From IMG/VR virus record IMGVR_UViG_3300021964_000012, positions 124,001 through 188,000 of that record: a stretch of DNA of 64,000 bases; one strand, written 5' to 3'. The translations under genes and the position numbers were made by a program. The notes under the pieces were generated by a model. It had not been told where the DNA came from. It ran no database searches and saw only the letters and a list, made by a program, of their open reading frames with translations. Within the stretch, counting starts at the first letter, position 1. Each line of letters starts with the position of its first letter. Positions 1,417 through 62,905 of the stretch are shown here, one piece after another.

Positions 1417-3711
1417 CTATTCTTGTGTTTCATTGACAGTTACAATACCATTTGTGTCTATGTAAGCATCACTGGGTGAGCCTTTAGGTTTAACATCAAG
1501 TGTTATTCTTGGACGTTTGCCTTTGAACCATACATCAGCAGTTACATGAACATTTTCCAGTTTTTCAAAAAGTATCTTTTTACTTAACGGCACTTTGATA
1601 ATTTCGTCAATCTTTCTGCCCAATGGTCTTGCACCCATTTTAGGATCATATCCAACGTCAACAAGATATTCTACCATTGCTTCTGTTACAATAATATTAA
1701 TATTTTTTTGTTTTAGGTTTGCTCTGAGTTCGTTGATAAACTTTGCAACAATTTTTTTGATTGCAAATGGTTCTAGTGTTTTGAACTTGACTATCAGATC
1801 TAATCTGTTGCGTAGTTCTGGCTTGAAAAAATCTTTTACTGCTTTGTCTTCACTGCCAGTACGTACAAGTTCTTGACCAAATCCAATATTGTTGTTTTCG
1901 TTGTCTCTAGCACCAAGATTTGATGTTAGTATAATAATACAGTTTTTTACATCAACAGTTTTGCCATTTGATCCTGTGATCTTACCTTCGTCCATCATTT
2001 GTAGAAATATGTTTGCTACATCTGGATGGGCTTTTTCAATTTCATCAAACAGCAGGACACTGTAGGGATTTTTACTAACATCTGAAATTAGTTTACCACC
2101 GCTGAGTGTGCTATCATCATAGCCGACAAAACCTGGAGGTGCGCCAAGCAAGCTGCTAACTGTGTGTTTGTCTTGATATTCGCTCATGTCATAACGCAAC
2201 AGATGCATTTCTAAATTGTTGCTCAACAGTTTAGCAAATTCAGTTTTACCTGTACCAGTAGGACCAAGAAATAAAAATGCTCCCATTGGACGATTTGGCG
2301 TGCTTATACCTGCATAGTTTACATAGAGCCTTTCTAGCACTTCGTCTACTACATGATCTTGTCCAAAAAGTTTTTCTTTGATGTTGTTATCTAGATTTTG
2401 TACTTTTTCACTAGCATCGCTCGCCACTTTTGTTTCTGGAATGTTTGCAATTCTTGAAACCTGTTTGTCAATTAAATCTTCTGTAATTACCAAACCTTCT
2501 TGATCTTTAACACGTTCAGTTGCACATGCTCCATCTACTAGGTCTATGCTCTTGTCTGGATTTTTTTTGTCGTGCATGTATCTAGTTGCTAATTCAACTG
2601 CTTTTTCAATGGCGCCTTTGTCTATTGCGACATTGTGAAACTTTTCTAATCTAGGACGCAATCCTTCTAATATCTTTACGGTGGTTTCTTTGTCAGGTTC
2701 ATCTATGCTGACTTTGTAAAAGCGCCTCATCAATGCACGATCTTTTTCAAAACTCTCGTAAAATTCTTCCCAGGTTGTACTTGCAATAACTTTGAGATTG
2801 CCTTTGGTAATTGCAGGTTTGATCATGTTGGAAAAATCCAAACTGCTTCCACCTGTTGAACCAGCACCTTTCATGGTATGTGCTTCGTCTATAAAAAGTA
2901 TACAGTTCTTTTTTGATTCTAAAGCTGAAATAATATCTTTGAGTTTTTCTTCAAATTCGCCACGGTACTTAGAGCCAGCAAGTAGACTGCCTATTTCCAA
3001 ACCCCACACCTCAAAGTTTTTAAGGAACTTTGGTATTTTATTGTCTTTTATTCTAGTTGCCAAGCCTTCTGCAATAGCAGTTTTTCCAACACCTGGATCT
3101 CCTACCATTAATACATTACTTTTAAAACGTTTAGCTAATACTGTAACTATTTCTTCGAGTTCTGTTTCTCGACCAATAACTGGTTCAAGTTTATCGTCTT
3201 TGGCAAGTTTGCTCACATTTATGCAGTGCTCTTCGAGTATTTCATTTGCGGTTGAGATGTCAATTCCGTCTTTGGATTTACCATTATATGTTTGTTGCCA
3301 GTGCATTACAAATTCTTGTTTGACAAGTCCATGTTTCAGCATATAGTAGGCCGCATGACTGTTGGTTTCAGCCATGATTGCTAACCACAGATCAATGGTT
3401 TCCATACTTCGTCTACCACCAAACATAACCTGTGTTAATGCTCTGTTGAAAACTCTTTCAAGTGCATTTGTCTTTTTTGGGTCTCCTTTAACTGGATTGC
3501 TGACCAGCATGGTTTGTGAATCAATATATAATTGTAAATCTGACACAATAGCATCAGAACTGGAACCAAAAGACTCAATGCATCTTTTGAATTTTGGATA
3601 CTGCACCATTGCTAATGTAAGGTGTTCGATTGTCACATAATCGTGTTTCTTGTCTTTCGCAAGTTTATGAGCAGTTGCAAGTATTTGTTCTATTTCAGGA
3701 CTGTGTTGCAT
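1417..3711 (-). CDS. clpA: ClpA-type AAA+ unfoldase
   Basis: Clp N-domain, two Walker A motifs (GDPGVGKT, GPTGTGKT), GSKYRGEFEE pore loop, ClpP-docking IGF loop (NNIGFG), no ClpB M-domain. Confidence 0.92.
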   Translation of the reverse strand: MQHSPEIEQILATAHKLAKDKKHDYVTIEHLTLAMVQYPKFKRCIESFGSSSDAIVSDLQLYIDSQTMLVSNPVKGDPKKTNALERVFNRALTQVMFGGRRSMETIDLWLAIMAETNSHAAYYMLKHGLVKQEFVMHWQQTYNGKSKDGIDISTANEILEEHCINVSKLAKDDKLEPVIGRETELEEIVTVLAKRFKSNVLMVGDPGVGKTAIAEGLATRIKDNKIPKFLKNFEVWGLEIGSLLAGSKYRGEFEEKLKDIISALESKKNCILFIDEAHTMKGAGSTGGSSLDFSNMIKPAITKGNLKVIASTTWEEFYESFEKDRALMRRFYKVSIDEPDKETTVKILEGLRPRLEKFHNVAIDKGAIEKAVELATRYMHDKKNPDKSIDLVDGACATERVKDQEGLVITEDLIDKQVSRIANIPETKVASDASEKVQNLDNNIKEKLFGQDHVVDEVLERLYVNYAGISTPNRPMGAFLFLGPTGTGKTEFAKLLSNNLEMHLLRYDMSEYQDKHTVSSLLGAPPGFVGYDDSTLSGGKLISDVSKNPYSVLLFDEIEKAHPDVANIFLQMMDEGKITGSNGKTVDVKNCIIILTSNLGARDNENNNIGFGQELVRTGSEDKAVKDFFKPELRNRLDLIVKFKTLEPFAIKKIVAKFINELRANLKQKNINIIVTEAMVEYLVDVGYDPKMGARPLGRKIDEIIKVPLSKKILFEKLENVHVTADVWFKGKRPRITLDVKPKGSPSDAYIDTNGIVTVNETQE

Positions 3712-7652: not shown

Positions 7653-8375
7653 ATGTCTCGAGCTAAACGAAAAGCAAAATATCAAAGACAACTTCAACAA
7701 GACAACACAATAAACTTCAACCAAGCACTAAAACGCAAGCACATAGAACTTCTTCCGAAGTCGCGTAATCAAGAACAACTTATCTTAAACCTATTAGATC
7801 CACACACGAGTATCACTGTGGCAACCGGACCTGCAGGCACGGGTAAGACTTATCTTGCAATGTTAGCGGCTATAAAAGCATTTAAAGATGGTGCGTGTGA
7901 ACGTATTGTATTGACTCGTCCAGCAGTAGGTGTTGATGATGAAAAGCATGGATTTTTGCCCGGTGACTTGAACAGTAAAATGGAGCCGTGGACAAGACCT
8001 TTGTTTGATGTACTTCGTGAATTCTATACCACAAAAGAAATAGCACGTATGCTAGAAGAACAAACTATTGAAATATCGCCATTGGCTTTTATGAGAGGAC
8101 GTACATTCAAGGATGCCTGGATTATAGCTGATGAAATGCAAAATGCAACGCCTAGTCAAATGAAAATGCTAATGACAAGAATAGGCAAAAATTCAAAAAT
8201 AGTAATCACAGGAGACGTTGAACAAACGGATAGAACCGTACACAATAACGGTTTAATTGATTTATGCAAAAGACTAGAAACTGCTCGCAGTGGACTAGCC
8301 GTTTGTTACATGAGCAATCAGGATATACAAAGACATCCTATTATTGACACAGTATTGGAGATCTACGCAACTTAA
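7653..8375 (+). CDS. phoH: PhoH-family ATPase
   Basis: GPAGTGKT, GFLPGDL..K, PLAFMRGRTF, DEMQN, GDVEQTD, RHP motifs; AGGAG RBS. Confidence 0.95.
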   Translation: MSRAKRKAKYQRQLQQDNTINFNQALKRKHIELLPKSRNQEQLILNLLDPHTSITVATGPAGTGKTYLAMLAAIKAFKDGACERIVLTRPAVGVDDEKHGFLPGDLNSKMEPWTRPLFDVLREFYTTKEIARMLEEQTIEISPLAFMRGRTFKDAWIIADEMQNATPSQMKMLMTRIGKNSKIVITGDVEQTDRTVHNNGLIDLCKRLETARSGLAVCYMSNQDIQRHPIIDTVLEIYAT

Positions 8376-8379
8376 AAAT

Positions 8380-8482
8380 TGGCTCTGGGAGAAGGATTCG
8401 AACCTCCAAGGTTAAATATATTGCAGTACATTCAACCATACGGTTAACAGCCGTACGTGTTTACCAATTTCACCATCCCAGA
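8380..8482 (-). tRNA. tRNA-Asn(GUU), atypical class-II body with 11-bp variable arm (103 nt, CCA encoded)
   Basis: TCTGGGA TG GTG AAATTGGTAAA CAC G TACGG CT-GTT-AA CCGTA T GGTTGAATGTA CTGCAA TATATTTAACC TT GGAGG TTCGAAT CCTTC TCCCAGA G CCA; all stems pair; U1-A72, G73. Confidence 0.9.
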
Positions 8483-8488
8483 GTATTC

Positions 8489-9319
8489 TTATACTTTGTT
8501 GATCTTTTCTAGTGCAGGAATCATACGTGTCACACCTATGCCTCCGCCTACTCTTTGAAAGAAGTCAAACTCTAAAAACTTTTCTAGTTCTGCTTCGACT
8601 CTTTCCTTGCCAAACAACTTGAATAGTAGTTTACTATAAGCACCATCTGTAATACTATGGAATGTATCACGCATCATATCAACATCACATGAACGTTCTG
8701 CTGATCCAATAGTTTCCATACCACCTAGTATAACGTCCATCTTCTTTGCAGTATTTCCGTCATCGTTTCTGGCCATGTTCCAAAAAGGTGATGTTAGTTC
8801 AGGGAAGTTTGTAATAAGTGTTTGGCCAAACTCTTCTTCCATCTTAAGTTCGTGTTCTGCTTCCATTTCTGTATCAGCACCTAGTCCAAAATGTTGTTGC
8901 CATTCAGCATAGGTCTTTTCTGTAATATTACCAAATCCTAAGTATTCACATAGTTCATACTCCATGGATTTTAAATCATCTACACTGCCTGGCATTTCAA
9001 ATTCAAACATTGGAAATATTATATCATGTCTGCCTGGTATTGCATTAGGCTCTTGTCTATAGGAAGTGGAGACACAAAAAAACCCCTTACTGTCGGGGCT
9101 ACTTAATAATTCATGTTCCAACCACATCTGGCCGGTTTGCGGTAGTGGCCATACTTGGCCTGCGTAATTGTATGTTGCTACGTTGAATGGATCTTCACAT
9201 GCGGCTAGTATGCTCAATCTGTTTTGTGTGTGTACTTCAAGAAAACCTTTTTCCAAAAAAAATGACCTTAAAAGGCCAACTGTGGAAGTGAATTTGCTTG
9301 GGTCTATTAGTTGCGTCAT
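8489..9319 (-). CDS. class IIb aminoacyl-tRNA synthetase catalytic-domain-only protein (AsnRS-like / archaeal-type asparagine synthetase-like)
   Basis: Motif 1 (RSFFLEKGFLEVHT), motif 2 (SYRQE...RH...FPMFEFE), motif 3 (GGGIGVTRM), ETIGSAER; no N-terminal OB-fold anticodon-binding domain. Confidence 0.85.
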   Translation of the reverse strand: MTQLIDPSKFTSTVGLLRSFFLEKGFLEVHTQNRLSILAACEDPFNVATYNYAGQVWPLPQTGQMWLEHELLSSPDSKGFFCVSTSYRQEPNAIPGRHDIIFPMFEFEMPGSVDDLKSMEYELCEYLGFGNITEKTYAEWQQHFGLGADTEMEAEHELKMEEEFGQTLITNFPELTSPFWNMARNDDGNTAKKMDVILGGMETIGSAERSCDVDMMRDTFHSITDGAYSKLLFKLFGKERVEAELEKFLEFDFFQRVGGGIGVTRMIPALEKINKV

Positions 9320-9487: not shown

Positions 9488-9955
9488 CTAAAACTTACCT
9501 AAAAATCTTGCTATATGATGTACCCATGGCAACAACATTATAGCCATAAATGTGTTAGCACCAGTGTGTGCAAGTGCTATTCGAAGTGTATCGCCTTTGG
9601 GCATGCCATCGCTCACAAAAAAACCGGCTAACCAAATGGTGCCGGTAGTTCCAATGTTTGCGCCTAACACTGCCGCTATGGCTGCAGGCAGAGGCAGTGC
9701 CCCTGAGGCCACCAGTGCAATTATTGCCGTTGTACTTAAACTTGAACTTTGCCAAAGCAGTGTCATTACAATACCACCTAGAAACATATAGATTGGATTG
9801 CCTAAAAAGAAGTTTAAGTGTTCCAAGTTACCCATAGACTTCATACCACCTGAGAACATTTTCAGCCCTATATAAAATACTACCAGTCCAACAAGAGCCG
9901 TCATTATGGGATTGCCTAAGTCCATCCTACATACCTTTTTAATAAGTTTGTTCAT
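9488..9955 (-). CDS. Na+/phosphate cotransporter (NptA/SLC34-like), single repeat
   Basis: QSSS signature, GANIGTT motif, several TM helices. Confidence 0.8.
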   Translation of the reverse strand: MNKLIKKVCRMDLGNPIMTALVGLVVFYIGLKMFSGGMKSMGNLEHLNFFLGNPIYMFLGGIVMTLLWQSSSLSTTAIIALVASGALPLPAAIAAVLGANIGTTGTIWLAGFFVSDGMPKGDTLRIALAHTGANTFMAIMLLPWVHHIARFLGKF

Positions 9956-15030: not shown

Positions 15031-15059
15031 ATTATATTATGATTAGCGAGGTAAGTCAA
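15031..15059 (-). promoter_or_regulatory. sigma70-type promoter for the clamp loader
   Basis: TTGACT-17-TATAAT, then AGGAG RBS. Confidence 0.7.
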
Positions 15060-16734
15060 CCAGTTCTGGAAAAACATCTAATAGTTTTACATTGTAGATT
15101 TTATCTCTTTGTTCAATCTCTTTCCAAAATAGTTTAGGATTAAACGTTTCGTTATTGTCCATGGCATGTATAATTGCCATATAACCAGTTGTACTTTTTC
15201 CATAAGGATCAAGTGGGCGTAACCATTCTACATGTTTTTGAAATTTTTCTCGGATTAGATCTTTGAGATACTCAGGAGCAGTTGTAACACGCAGATATTG
15301 CTTGTTGGTTAGTAGGTTCACAATCCATTGGTCAGCATCTATTAATCCTTGCTCTACCCAATTTCGATGAAAGTCTGGCATATGTAATGCGTTCAGAATT
15401 GTAATTGTTGATTGAACATTAAAGAATATATCTGGGCGTTTTTGTTTAATTTGTTTGGTAAAATCGACAATCTTGTCCCAGGTGTATGATCCAGGGCGTA
15501 AATATAACGCACGATCGTATTCAGCATCAAGACTTGCAAATACAATAATATTTTTAAAGTTTTGCCACAACTTAAAAATATCTCTTGAACCTAATCCAGA
15601 ATAAGTCATGTTTGTAATATACATTAGTTTTATATCGTGTCTTTTTTTCTCATCTAGTTTTTCAACAAAATCATATGTTTCTTTCATCATTAAAGGCTCA
15701 CCACCTTCGAATATGATCTGATTAAAATGATCTATATGTTTAAAATATTGTTCTAGTAAATCTGGATTACTTGCTACAAAGGCTTTATCAGGAACAGTCA
15801 TTCCTAGTAACTTTTCCACACTGTAAAGACTACTCGAAAACTTAGTCTGACACATTCTACATTGCAGATTACATAAATTGTTTGGTTTATAGTTCAGTAA
15901 CTTTATTTCAAATTTTTCAAGACTTCCATCATTATTTGTGCTTAAAACACTTGGAAATTCTTGTATGAAGTCTCTATTATAGGCCGTTCTTGCAGTATCA
16001 CCTTTATATTTTTGATCTTTTAAATAGCAAGTTTTACAAGCCTCTAGTTCTTTGCCTTCAAGCATATCAAGTCTAAGTTGGCGTGTATTTTTATTGTTCC
16101 ATATATCTTCAAGAGTTTCGTTGTTTGCATTTCCTAAAGCGGTGTCTGTAGATATGTAACAACAAGGGTTCACCTTATTATCTTGTGTGACATACTGACT
16201 TATCCACGGTAAAACACAAAATGTTTTACTTTCTAAAAATAGGTGCCTTGCTCTATCTGGCAAATTCTCTAAGAGAACACTGTTATTTCCTAGCCCACTA
16301 AAAGTTTGATAGATTGAAATATCTTTATATGTATTTGTATAATCACCTGAAGCTTTGTATAAATTGATTAGCACAGGGTCAACACTTGTGTTTTTATGAA
16401 CCCAAAGATATTCTTCTTCTAAATTAGGATTAGTTGAAATAATAATTGTAAAAAAATTACTAATATCAAGTTCGTTTAACATTGTCTGCACACTTTGTAG
16501 TACAGTGTTAGATTGTAATTCTTTATAAAAATCTTTTGTTATTGTCAATACAATGCGATGGTGTTCTTGATATGTAGTTTTGTAATTTTTTTTTAATTGA
16601 TTATAAAGCTCGAATAGATTATTTTCGTATAAGTCACAATCAATTACATCAAGAACTGTGTATGTTTCTTTTAGTTCATTTATCCATTGTTCTATTGTTG
16701 GGAGATTACTACCTTTGGTAAATGTCAATGGCAT
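15043..16734 (-). CDS. radical SAM protein with SPASM/twitch-like domain
   Basis: CNLQCRMC, GGEP, FCVLPW..PCC, CKTC. Confidence 0.85.
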   Translation of the reverse strand: MPLTFTKGSNLPTIEQWINELKETYTVLDVIDCDLYENNLFELYNQLKKNYKTTYQEHHRIVLTITKDFYKELQSNTVLQSVQTMLNELDISNFFTIIISTNPNLEEEYLWVHKNTSVDPVLINLYKASGDYTNTYKDISIYQTFSGLGNNSVLLENLPDRARHLFLESKTFCVLPWISQYVTQDNKVNPCCYISTDTALGNANNETLEDIWNNKNTRQLRLDMLEGKELEACKTCYLKDQKYKGDTARTAYNRDFIQEFPSVLSTNNDGSLEKFEIKLLNYKPNNLCNLQCRMCQTKFSSSLYSVEKLLGMTVPDKAFVASNPDLLEQYFKHIDHFNQIIFEGGEPLMMKETYDFVEKLDEKKRHDIKLMYITNMTYSGLGSRDIFKLWQNFKNIIVFASLDAEYDRALYLRPGSYTWDKIVDFTKQIKQKRPDIFFNVQSTITILNALHMPDFHRNWVEQGLIDADQWIVNLLTNKQYLRVTTAPEYLKDLIREKFQKHVEWLRPLDPYGKSTTGYMAIIHAMDNNETFNPKLFWKEIEQRDKIYNVKLLDVFPELVDLPR

Positions 16735-35761: not shown

Positions 35762-37315
35762 ATGCGAATATTAGTACTAGGAAATAACACAAAAGATACT
35801 GACGATCAAGTCAAAGAGCTTGCAGAGAAGGCTGGTACATATAATCACGGGCTCGTTGAAACAACAGATCAAGATTTCTCACAACACGGATATTACCACA
35901 CCACATTAATAGATTTATCACCTGGTGAAATAATGAAATTTGTACACCAGTTTGATGAAGTGATGGTGTTAGATCAACCAGCAAGGAGTTGGGATAGTCA
36001 AAAGCCAAGACTTAGCACCTATAAGTTGATCACTTCCCTAGAAAGACAGAGCAATAGACTAGGTCTTAAAGTTAGCGGTACTGATAATGACAGTTTTGTT
36101 GATATGAAGTATTGGACAGATTTGTTCAAATCAAATCGAAGTTTTTGTGCTTATCCATGGATAGTACATAGTCAAGACAAGGTTGATGCTAATAAATTAA
36201 ATCTTTGTGCTCGAAGTTCGCACGAAGTCACTTCATTAAAAGATCTTGGCAACTGGCAAACAAATCCTGCCTTTACAAAAATTAGAGAAAAAATGAAACG
36301 TGGCGAAAAACTTCCAGGCACATGTCGTGTATGTTACAAATACGAAGATCGTGGATTAACAGGATATAGAACACACGACAGCCTAGACTGGATTGCACGT
36401 TTAGGACTAAAAAATATTAAAGATTTTGACAAGATAGATAGTCCGTATTATTATGAGCTTAGACTTAGTAACCGATGCAACCTAATGTGTCGAATGTGTA
36501 CACCTCAACACAGTCATCTACTAAAGCAGGAGTTTGAAGAAAATCCTGGTTTGGTCAATAGTGGCCAGATGGACGATCCAACCCAAAGTTGGACAGATAC
36601 CGGTGTAGTTGACATAGAAAAATTAACATCTAAACATAAAGTTTACCTAACCGGCGGTGAGCCAATTATTATGCATGAAGTCTATGCATTCATGCGACAA
36701 TGCATAGACTTAAGAAAAACTGATTTTCTTTTTACCCTTGGAACAAATGCTCAACGATTAAATCCATTGTTCTTAAATCTTGCTAGTAAATTTAGCAATA
36801 TGCACTTCAGTGTAAGTATTGATGGTTATGGAAAAGTAAATGATTATATAAGATGGAAAAGTGATTTTGATACCATAATTAAAAATTGTCATATTCTAAT
36901 CAATCAAGGACACCAAATAACATGGAATCATGTTCCAACCATATGGGGAGTACATCGAACACACGAATTGTTTGAATACGTCAGCGAACATTTTCCTAAG
37001 GTTCCTCTCTATTTACAATACAATCGTGTTGAAATTACCAGTGCATTTAAAAGTCCGCTCATTGAGGAGACAATCGAAAGCATGGAACGATGTAAAAAAA
37101 CAATATTGTACACTAGTGACGGCAAAGACTGTACCAGTGGAATTGATGCTTTTTATGATCACTATAGTAGATATAAAGTTAACAAAGATGATTTAAAAAA
37201 GTTTTTTACATGGAATGATTTAATGGACAAAGCCAGAAATATATCAATGGCAGATTATATCCCAGAGCTAGACAGATGCAGAACAATGCTAGAGGTGAAC
37301 CAGAATGCAATTTGA
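35762..37315 (+). CDS. radical SAM protein with SPASM/twitch-like domain
   Basis: CNLMCRMC, GGEP, FCAYPW, CRVC, SIDG. Confidence 0.85.
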   Translation: MRILVLGNNTKDTDDQVKELAEKAGTYNHGLVETTDQDFSQHGYYHTTLIDLSPGEIMKFVHQFDEVMVLDQPARSWDSQKPRLSTYKLITSLERQSNRLGLKVSGTDNDSFVDMKYWTDLFKSNRSFCAYPWIVHSQDKVDANKLNLCARSSHEVTSLKDLGNWQTNPAFTKIREKMKRGEKLPGTCRVCYKYEDRGLTGYRTHDSLDWIARLGLKNIKDFDKIDSPYYYELRLSNRCNLMCRMCTPQHSHLLKQEFEENPGLVNSGQMDDPTQSWTDTGVVDIEKLTSKHKVYLTGGEPIIMHEVYAFMRQCIDLRKTDFLFTLGTNAQRLNPLFLNLASKFSNMHFSVSIDGYGKVNDYIRWKSDFDTIIKNCHILINQGHQITWNHVPTIWGVHRTHELFEYVSEHFPKVPLYLQYNRVEITSAFKSPLIEETIESMERCKKTILYTSDGKDCTSGIDAFYDHYSRYKVNKDDLKKFFTWNDLMDKARNISMADYIPELDRCRTMLEVNQNAI

Positions 37316-61180: not shown

Positions 61181-61692
61181 TCAATTACTCCAGTAATTTG
61201 TAGTGTATATCTAGATGTTTTTCCAACATTGGCTGCAAGATGCGGAGTGTCATTTTTCCATACTATGTAATCGCCAGCACGCCAGTCTGTGATTACTGTG
61301 TCTTCAATTTCACTTACATGGCCACTTTGCCAATCTTCTAAATAAATTATGGCTCTGTGAATATCACCTTGCCAGTTGTGTAGTTCGCGAAATCTTGCGT
61401 AGGTATCTCCATGCATTGGTAAACAACAACCTGGATTCATTCTATACACACTCCAACTAAAATAGCGCCAGTCAAATACATTACGTATTAGATGCATCCA
61501 TTCAGGTTCTTCTTGTCGCATGTCATACATGTCACCTGTGAATTTGGTCTGTGTGTAACCGAGGTTACGCCATTCCTTTAAACTTACAGGATCATTGAAT
61601 GGTTCGTTGATGTACATTAGGTCTTTGAATGCATCCATCCATACAGGATAGGTGTGACCACTATACCAGTTTTTTTGTTCTTGTATTTCCAT
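61177..61692 (-). CDS. 2OG-Fe(II) oxygenase/cupin-like protein
   Basis: LPMHGD...PHLAANVG..RYTLQITG. Confidence 0.75.
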   Translation of the reverse strand: MEIQEQKNWYSGHTYPVWMDAFKDLMYINEPFNDPVSLKEWRNLGYTQTKFTGDMYDMRQEEPEWMHLIRNVFDWRYFSWSVYRMNPGCCLPMHGDTYARFRELHNWQGDIHRAIIYLEDWQSGHVSEIEDTVITDWRAGDYIVWKNDTPHLAANVGKTSRYTLQITGVID

Positions 61693-62905
61693 AGTGTATT
61701 ACTTTGTACTTGTTGGTTTTTGTAGGCAGTGTACGCCATGGGTCTACAATTGTAGATCCATTGGGTATGTCGCAGTAGAAATTACTCATTACTGCAATAT
61801 GGCCAGTGTAACCATATGTAATGTTTCTGTTATGTGCATAGAGTATTATTGATGGTTCGTTAATTTTGTCAACACAATTCGTATTATCGTCGGCTAGTGG
61901 ATCAACATAGGTAATTTTTTGTCCTTGTTGTTCAATGTAGTATCCAACCAGTGTGCTATAACTTCCAATACAGAATGGTACGTCTGGCTTGTATGCTTTG
62001 CCGTGTATAACAATTGGTTTTCCATCTGCATGCTCTATTAAAAAATCTGCTAGGTTCTTTGCTTGTACTTCTCTGGCACCCATTATAGTATCAAACATGT
62101 CGTAACCAATGTTGTATTCCTGTGCTAGCCAACGCAGAGCAATATTATCTCTTGGATGGCATGCTCCTGCATCTCCCATGCCGGCAGTCATATACTTTGG
62201 CCCCATAATACGCATTGTACTTTGTGCTAGAGCATCAGTAACAACATCAACGTTGATATTACCTATCTTAAGTGCAAAGTCCTGTATCATATTTACAAGC
62301 CCTACTTTAGCACTAATAAATGTGTTGTAGAATATTTTAATTGCTTCACATTCGTCCCAAGTTCCTGTAACATATCTTGGATCATTTTTCATCAATGGTT
62401 TATATAGATTGATAAGATCTTCCATCTCACTTGGATTGCCTGTTTCTGTTCCTATCATTACCATTTCAGGATTTGCAAAATCCCATTTTACACTACCCAT
62501 TGCAATTAAATATGGATTGTACAAAAATTGATGCTTGTTATCCAACAGGGTATAGAAGTGTCTACGTGTTGTACCAGGTAAGACTGTTGATATCAATACT
62601 ATACGTTTTGGTTTGGTTGCATTTTCATTCACCATTTGAATTGCATCTTTAACTGCATCATGACCAAAGTCTCGTGGTTCCATATGTGAACTTGGCACAC
62701 TGCCATCATAGCCTTCTGCATGGGGCGTTTGTACTGCAATAAATATCCAGTCACTGTTGTCTATCATTTCTTTTGGTGTGTTGCAAACTTTTACACTGTC
62801 GCTGGTACGTGGGTAAATATCATAACCATGCACACTATATTTTTCAGCCATAACTTCAGCACAATCAAGACCAAGTTTTCCCAAGCCTATAAATCCAATT
62901 TTCAT
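61661..62905 (-). CDS. ugd: UDP-glucose/GDP-mannose 6-dehydrogenase
   Basis: GLGKLG Rossmann fold, AVQTP, STVLPGT, K..YN, G.GDAGACHPRD, AYKP. Confidence 0.88.
   Translation of the reverse strand: MKIGFIGLGKLGLDCAEVMAEKYSVHGYDIYPRTSDSVKVCNTPKEMIDNSDWIFIAVQTPHAEGYDGSVPSSHMEPRDFGHDAVKDAIQMVNENATKPKRIVLISTVLPGTTRRHFYTLLDNKHQFLYNPYLIAMGSVKWDFANPEMVMIGTETGNPSEMEDLINLYKPLMKNDPRYVTGTWDECEAIKIFYNTFISAKVGLVNMIQDFALKIGNINVDVVTDALAQSTMRIMGPKYMTAGMGDAGACHPRDNIALRWLAQEYNIGYDMFDTIMGAREVQAKNLADFLIEHADGKPIVIHGKAYKPDVPFCIGSYSTLVGYYIEQQGQKITYVDPLADDNTNCVDKINEPSIILYAHNRNITYGYTGHIAVMSNFYCDIPNGSTIVDPWRTLPTKTNKYKVIHYGNTRTKKLV

Follow-up and report, generated by a model that had tools for sequence, protein, structure and literature searches.

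The window analysed here, a 64,000-nt stretch of the IMG/VR virus record IMGVR_UViG_3300021964_000012 (positions 124,001 to 188,000), contains on its minus strand a tRNA gene (8380–8482) located immediately downstream of a gene for a 276-aa protein (8489–9319). The two genes are separated by a 6-nt spacer (8483–8488) between the stop codon and tRNA position 1, which implies a single transcript cut by RNase P. A convergent PhoH gene (7653–8375, plus strand) ends 4 nt from the 3' end of the tRNA. Near PhoH lies a 155-aa ORF (9488–9955, minus strand) matching only the first part of the Na+/Pi cotransporter family (Pfam, 2.3e-16), which may be a fragment or a short phosphate-related auxiliary gene. 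The rest of the window carries T4-like cyanophage accessory and structural genes, including two radical-SAM-domain proteins (15043–16734, minus strand; 35762–37315, plus strand), a 764-aa ATP-dependent protease homologue (1417–3711, minus strand) and a UDP-glucose dehydrogenase (61661–62905, minus strand); this is an accessory-gene-rich region of a large cyanomyovirus.

The tRNA comprises 100 nt followed by an encoded CCA. It consists of a 7-bp acceptor stem UCUGGGA/UCCCAGA, with U1 (8482) paired to A72 (8384) and discriminator G73 (8383); U8 G9 and a tRNA-Leu-type D arm (8457–8475) with the 3-bp stem GUG/CAC and loop AAAUUGGUAAA; a 5-bp anticodon stem UACGG/CCGUA with loop CUGUUAA (8444–8450) and anticodon GUU (8446–8448), reading the Asn codons AAC/AAU; a 31-nt variable region; and a T arm GGAGG-UUCGAAU-CCUUC with a 5-bp stem. 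The variable region forms an extra arm (8410–8437) with an 11-bp stem GGUUGAAUGUA/UAUAUUUAACC, including two G-U pairs, in which the 5' strand occupies 8427–8437, the loop CUGCAA 8421–8426 and the 3' strand 8410–8420; it is flanked by U (8438) and UU (8408–8409).

The Rfam tRNA model (RF00005) matches this sequence over its full length (model positions 1–71) at 56.0 bits, against a gathering score of 29 (E 2.3e-9), and treats the arm as a 29-nt insertion. The minimum-free-energy fold is exactly this five-arm cloverleaf (-33.1 kcal/mol, z -3.44), and 1 of 200 shuffles folds as well. Rfam finds no other tRNA in the 64-kb window, while ARAGORN finds none at all. ARAGORN also miscalls long-arm relatives (in loci L009, L039 and L183; L numbers denote the viral and cellular loci retrieved for comparison) as tRNA-Glu(ctc), tRNA-Asn(att) or tRNA-Asp(atc), so Rfam and a purpose-written parser were used instead. 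Standard annotation will therefore under-report or mislabel this family, which exposes a blind spot in tRNA finders. Scans for a promoter or terminator role of the arm showed nothing specific.

The observation made in the sequence-only reading, a tRNA with an Asn anticodon, a Leu-like class II body, U1-A72, G73 and an exceptionally long variable arm, is thus confirmed in its coordinates and anatomy. Only an incidental detail did not hold: the C preceding U1, which could also pair with G73, is not conserved among relatives (A 50, U 38, C 3, G 1), and an eighth acceptor pair is rejected.

A megablast search of the region against phage records found nothing, and blastn with the tRNA returned only a chance T-arm match. 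However, tblastn detected the enzyme in Prochlorococcus phages P-SSM7, P-SSM2 and P-SSM5 at 65–67% identity, annotated as "tRNA ligase," and in each of them a GUU tRNA of 85–86 nt follows within about 10 nt. At least 597 contigs in IMG/VR encode a relative, and all 8000 scored protein candidates from the 90%-identity cluster database were hits. Of 155 related viral loci with enough downstream sequence, 154 have a GUU tRNA after the same 265–276-aa gene, in both enzyme clades, and the spacing is mostly 4–12 nt across the 149 loci measured. Five apparent exceptions (L033:2485–2584, L042:3381–3480 and L043–L045) represent a sub-lineage with a one-base bulge in the 5' strand of the T stem (GCAUGG/CCUGC) and lower Rfam scores (41.9 bits, relatives scoring 41.9–52.8 bits), and only L047 lacks the tRNA. 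More distant phage-type members, L168 and L204 (57 and 59% identity, respectively), keep the arrangement, whereas scans around huge-phage and distant homologues at a permissive threshold found no nearby tRNA. A pattern search of viral contigs for the tRNA independently of the enzyme was too unspecific, with none of the hits examined being a family member. The only literature mention found is a table row in Sullivan et al., 2010, "T4-GC 194, tRNA ligase" (PMC3037559); literature searches found no functional or structural description.

Among 94 distinct tRNA sequences, U1-A72, G73, U8 G9 and the GUU anticodon are invariant. The D arm keeps a tRNA-Leu-type architecture throughout and matches genuine tRNA-Leu genes in L233 and L240 almost base for base. 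Every helix of the tRNA covaries. In the window's clade, 96.3% of cells are paired and 16 pairs show changes on both sides; on both measures none of 500 shuffles reached the observed value, and slid registers gave 36–62% paired. In the P-SSM clade, the figures are 99.8% and 13 pairs. Covariation of the extra arm, which had been set beforehand as a test, is seen at its base, while its interior varies between A-U and G-U.

The extra arm always folds as a hairpin in the cyanophage members, but its size is free: the variable region ranges from 13 to 38 nt, with stems from 3 bp upward, and short arms are often capped by GNRA loops. In L168 the variable region has only about 7 nt and the arm is absent. 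In the window's clade, the long arms keep the loop GCAA and the 3' strand UAUUUA (within 8410–8426 in the window) unchanged in 34 sequences, while the 5' strand drifts between A and G, which points to sequence-level selection on one strand or to a recent common origin. The P-SSM clade has a different conserved apical motif (YNGCG). The flanks of the anticodon are unusually variable. Position 37 is U in 82 variants, A in 10 (including the window) and C in 2, and position 33 is C in 9. On a maximum-likelihood tree of 118 enzymes, the arm-length class changes at least 19 times, and loop types switch between nearly identical enzymes, indicating that the arm and the loop flanks evolve, or recombine, independently of the enzyme.

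Related cyanophage contigs carry other over-long tRNAs with class I anticodons that are not next to the enzyme: a 91-nt (+CCA) tRNA-Ile(UAU) with a variable region of about 25 nt (L021:3950–4043, L081:3864–3957) and an 82-nt (+CCA) tRNA-Trp(CCA) with a 12-nt variable region (L039:3105–3189, L048:1155–1239). Extra arms on non-Leu/Ser/Tyr tRNAs thus seem to recur in this phage group. Conversely, the tRNA annotated as Leu(UAA) in P-SSM7 (L001:2871–2943) is only 73 nt long and has a short variable loop, being a class I-shaped tRNA with a Leu anticodon and A73, the mirror image of the class II-shaped tRNA-Asn in the same genome. A tRNA-Ser with anticodon ACU (unmodified A34 in the gene) lies in a cyanophage tRNA cluster (L084:373–462).

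The product of the upstream gene is a stand-alone class IIb aminoacyl-tRNA synthetase catalytic core without an anticodon-binding domain. Pfam detects only the class II (D/K/N) synthetase core (PF00152, 4.5e-16), and the protein belongs to PHROG 29758 (8.9e-130), a family of unknown function. The AlphaFold2 model, built from an alignment that left out three sequences from annotated records, is confident (pLDDT 89, pTM 0.87), and Foldseek matches AsnRS and AspRS (TM 0.72–0.77), the nearest solved folds being AsnRS (1x54, TM 0.77) and archaeal/eukaryotic-type AspRS catalytic domains at 16–19% identity. Motif 2 (YR.E...GRH) and motif 3 (GGGIG.TR) are invariant. In profile alignments to solved structures, the segment QTGQMWLE lines up with QSSQLYLE of AsnRS, whereas AspRS has QSPQLYKQ, and MFEFE lines up with HVEAE of AsnRS, whereas AspRS has LDVEM. 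The AspRS lysine and aspartate at these sites clamp the substrate carboxylate and are replaced in AsnRS, which is taken, by analogy, as support for a putative Asn-type pocket. The protein is strongly acidic (pI 4.65, net charge about -20) and has no additional RNA-binding domain.

No NCBIfam model comes near its cut-off. The phage protein scores 36.5 bits against the asnS model TIGR00457 (cut-off 342.6), lacking the N-terminal OB-fold of canonical AsnRS, 18.4 bits against the asparagine synthetase A model NF005055 (cut-off 389) and 14–16 bits against EpmA/PoxA (EF-P lysyl ligase). Cellular homologues score 15.8–29.2 bits against the two asparagine synthetase A models (cut-offs 322–389) and at most 33.5 bits against EpmA/PoxA (cut-off 286.9). 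Structures of AsnA, archaeal AS-AR and EpmA are not matched by the family profile even at E<=10.

The enzyme family also exists in cells. An exhaustive search found 171 clusters at 50% identity below 1e-30, nearly all of them stand-alone proteins of 265–300 aa, and a scan of species-representative genomes gave 414 hits. True cellular copies, at 55–62% identity, occur in Patescibacteria (CPR bacteria), including complete 0.7-Mb chromosomes, in Weeksellaceae, Chitinophagales and Saprospiraceae among Bacteroidota, and in Rickettsiales and other lineages. Complete cellular genomes carrying the family include CP174359 and OZ246403. This extremely conserved protein (L184–L259; for example, L251:2462–3298 and L239:2109–2990), named by NCBI only as "amino acid--tRNA ligase-related protein," has invariant stretches such as EVHTQNRLSILAACEDP and two invariant cysteines. 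Its genes sit among housekeeping genes (Dus and dnaX, PEPCK and GldB/GldC, and pyrimidine genes); a search for conserved neighbours as a functional clue found only such lineage-specific genes. In Patescibacteria it lies between Dus and dnaX, with tRNA-Gln(UUG) 0.1–2.5 kb downstream in at least 10 loci. No adjacent GUU tRNA was found at the cellular loci. Cellular and phage enzymes share every motif, with no fixed differences between the two groups; the chemistry is therefore almost certainly the same, and the coupling to a special tRNA is a phage invention. Contigs at 59–81% identity that do carry the phage-type enzyme plus the long-armed tRNA (L180–L183, L185, L204), binned as Legionellales, Flavobacteriaceae, Bacteroidetes, Neomarinimicrobiota, Poseidoniia and Chloroflexota MAGs, are probably cyanophage DNA mis-binned into marine MAGs. 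Among them, L182 has the longest arm seen (38-nt variable region, 107-nt tRNA before CCA).

In comparison with known systems, the anticodon GUU, G73 and U1-A72 are shared with canonical bacterial tRNA-Asn, charged by AsnRS or by non-discriminating (ND) AspRS plus GatCAB, but that tRNA is class I, with a 4–5-nt variable loop, a 4-bp D stem and A37, and canonical AsnRS has an OB-fold that reads the anticodon. A37 is present in the window, but 84 of 94 relatives have U37 or C37. Bacterial tRNA-Leu shares U8 G9, the 3-bp D stem, the D loop AAAYUGGYAGA and an extra arm, but differs in having A73 and a Leu anticodon; G73, U1-A72, GUU and an arm of 7–38 nt characterize the phage tRNA. Allo-tRNAs and tRNA-Sec also combine a long arm with an anticodon outside Leu, Ser and Tyr, but have 8/4, 9/3 or 8/5 acceptor/T helices and Ser identity, whereas the tRNA described here is 7/5 and has no Ser-type acceptor stem. 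Archaeal AS-AR and bacterial AsnA are likewise stand-alone class IIb cores of about 270–330 aa without an anticodon-binding domain, but are not linked to a tRNA gene. The closest precedent is the selC* tRNA-Cys of Desulfobacterales with CysRS* (Mukai et al., 2017, as reviewed in PMC7609411), where a synthetase paralogue lacking the anticodon-binding domain is encoded beside a long-armed tRNA, which keeps the discriminator of its amino-acid family, and charges it through the acceptor stem. CysRS*, however, is a class I enzyme of a cellular system, and its tRNA has an 8/4 structure.

The interpretations offered in the sequence-only reading are partly supported. Of its three proposals, that the tRNA is the dedicated substrate of the adjacent enzyme has the best support; a nuclease-resistant replacement tRNA is not excluded, and insertion of Ser at Asn codons by SerRS is disfavoured. 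The preferred explanation, with a probability of about 0.45, is a co-transcribed synthetase-tRNA pair supplying Asn-tRNA for AAY codons. The tight, nearly universal linkage argues that the tRNA and enzyme work together, and so do the AsnRS-type pocket residues, the missing anticodon-binding domain and the invariance of the acceptor-end elements while neighbouring pairs covary. In this view, RNase P releases the tRNA a few nucleotides after the stop codon, and the enzyme would activate asparagine and load it onto the tRNA by reading the acceptor end (U1-A72 and G73) and the class II, tRNA-Leu-like core, not the anticodon. This would provide an Asn-tRNA supply independent of the host route, whether AsnRS or non-discriminating AspRS plus GatCAB. 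Since arm length is uncoupled from the enzyme, the arm is more likely a shape feature, or insulation from host class IIb enzymes, which approach tRNA from the variable-loop side, than a length-specific handle. The tRNA, its conservation and covariation, its linkage to the enzyme gene, the enzyme fold (as modelled) and motifs, and the independence of arm length from enzyme phylogeny rest on the analysis itself, while co-transcription, charging by this enzyme, Asn as the amino acid, use on the ribosome and the role of the arm are inferred. Several facts speak against this explanation: the protein is acidic, its cellular homologues show that the basic function of the family does not need a dedicated tRNA, huge-phage homologues lack a nearby tRNA, and a pyrimidine at position 37 and C33 are poor for decoding. 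Moreover, GUU, G73 and U1-A72 are exactly the bacterial set for host AsnRS or ND-AspRS plus GatCAB, so host charging would explain their invariance equally well.

The main rival, less probable and doubtful on present evidence, is that the enzyme does not use tRNA, being an AsnRS-derived ammonia-dependent asparagine synthetase, working like AS-AR or AsnA, or another amino-acid ligase. The tRNA would then be charged by host enzymes, and the two genes would travel together because both raise the Asn-tRNA supply. The occurrence of the family in many cellular lineages with the same motifs and no attached tRNA, the acidity of the protein, the host identity set in the tRNA (PMC1635274) and the independent evolution of arm length and loop flanks support this possibility. 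It does not explain, however, the Leu-type class II body or why the linkage is so tight and nearly universal while other phage tRNAs move around, and the family does not match AsnA or AS-AR models or structures any better than AsnRS or AspRS. Free Asn would be useless for translation if the host lacks AsnRS; literature searches on whether Prochlorococcus or marine Synechococcus have their own AsnRS or asparagine synthetase found nothing usable. A long arm faces class II synthetases and might also hinder host AspRS or AsnRS.

It is less likely that the tRNA is mainly a defence-evading replacement for host tRNA-Asn, with altered loop flanks and an unusual body making it a poor substrate for host tRNA-targeting nucleases and the anticodon-blind enzyme keeping it chargeable, although this is compatible with the preferred explanation as its selective reason. 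Six loop types occur around the invariant GUU (CUGUUUA, UUGUUUC, CUGUUAA, CCGUUUA, CUGUUUC, and CUGUUCA), with rapid turnover of positions 32, 33, 37, and 38; they switch between nearly identical enzymes (for example, L127 and L128, L020 and L031) and recur in both clades. This pattern fits diversifying selection or frequent recombination, and the other over-long tRNAs of the phage group agree with this possibility. However, no nuclease targeting tRNA-Asn is known in these hosts, the loop in the window is the canonical CUGUUAA, and the variation could equally reflect relaxed decoding constraint. Still more improbable is a role of the charged tRNA outside the ribosome, as an aminoacyl donor or scaffold for tRNA-dependent amidation or modification of a phage or host molecule, for which phage Mu Mom, using Gly-tRNA to modify DNA, is a precedent (PMC13219725). 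Pyrimidine-37 and C33 would agree with such a role, but the strict invariance of GUU is best explained by codon reading or an anticodon-reading synthetase, the T arm and acceptor look standard, and no conserved candidate transferase sits next to the pair, the neighbours differing between P-SSM2, P-SSM7 and the window. Charging by host SerRS or LeuRS, suggested by the long arm with G73 and by the Leu-like D arm, is very unlikely, since the arm falls to 3–4 bp in many close relatives and is absent in L168, the U1-A72/C2-G71 acceptor stem is not Ser-like, G73 instead of A73 argues against LeuRS, the linked enzyme is AsnRS-like, and proteome-wide substitution of Asn by Ser or Leu in an abundant lytic phage is implausible.

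A bolder and rather doubtful extension of the preferred explanation, which the data do not rule out, is that cyanophages carry a natural orthogonal pair, in which an anticodon-blind, domain-stripped AsnRS charges a class II-shaped tRNA(GUU) insulated from host class IIb synthetases by its Leu-type core and extra arm. Since charging would no longer depend on the anticodon loop, positions 32, 33, 37, and 38 would be free to diversify under pressure from host tRNA-targeting defences. The same family would then be an unrecognised minimal AsnRS, or Asn-forming enzyme, in CPR bacteria, Bacteroidota and Rickettsiales.

Overall, the tRNA is real and conserved, and apart from bare database annotation it has not been described. 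It differs from known tRNA-Asn in its class II body, and the putative pair differs from the known synthetase-tRNA pair lacking an anticodon-binding domain in its class IIb enzyme and viral setting. Even if the enzyme proves tRNA-independent, a tRNA whose variable region ranges from 7 to 38 nt and whose position 37 is usually a pyrimidine challenges standard rules of tRNA design. If the pair works as proposed, it would be the first class II-shaped tRNA-Asn and a minimal synthetase that does not read the anticodon, and it would offer a compact natural orthogonal pair for genetic-code engineering. It would also assign a function to a widespread, highly conserved cellular protein family, and, being carried by some of the most abundant viruses in the ocean, would show how a virus can make one step of decoding independent of its host.
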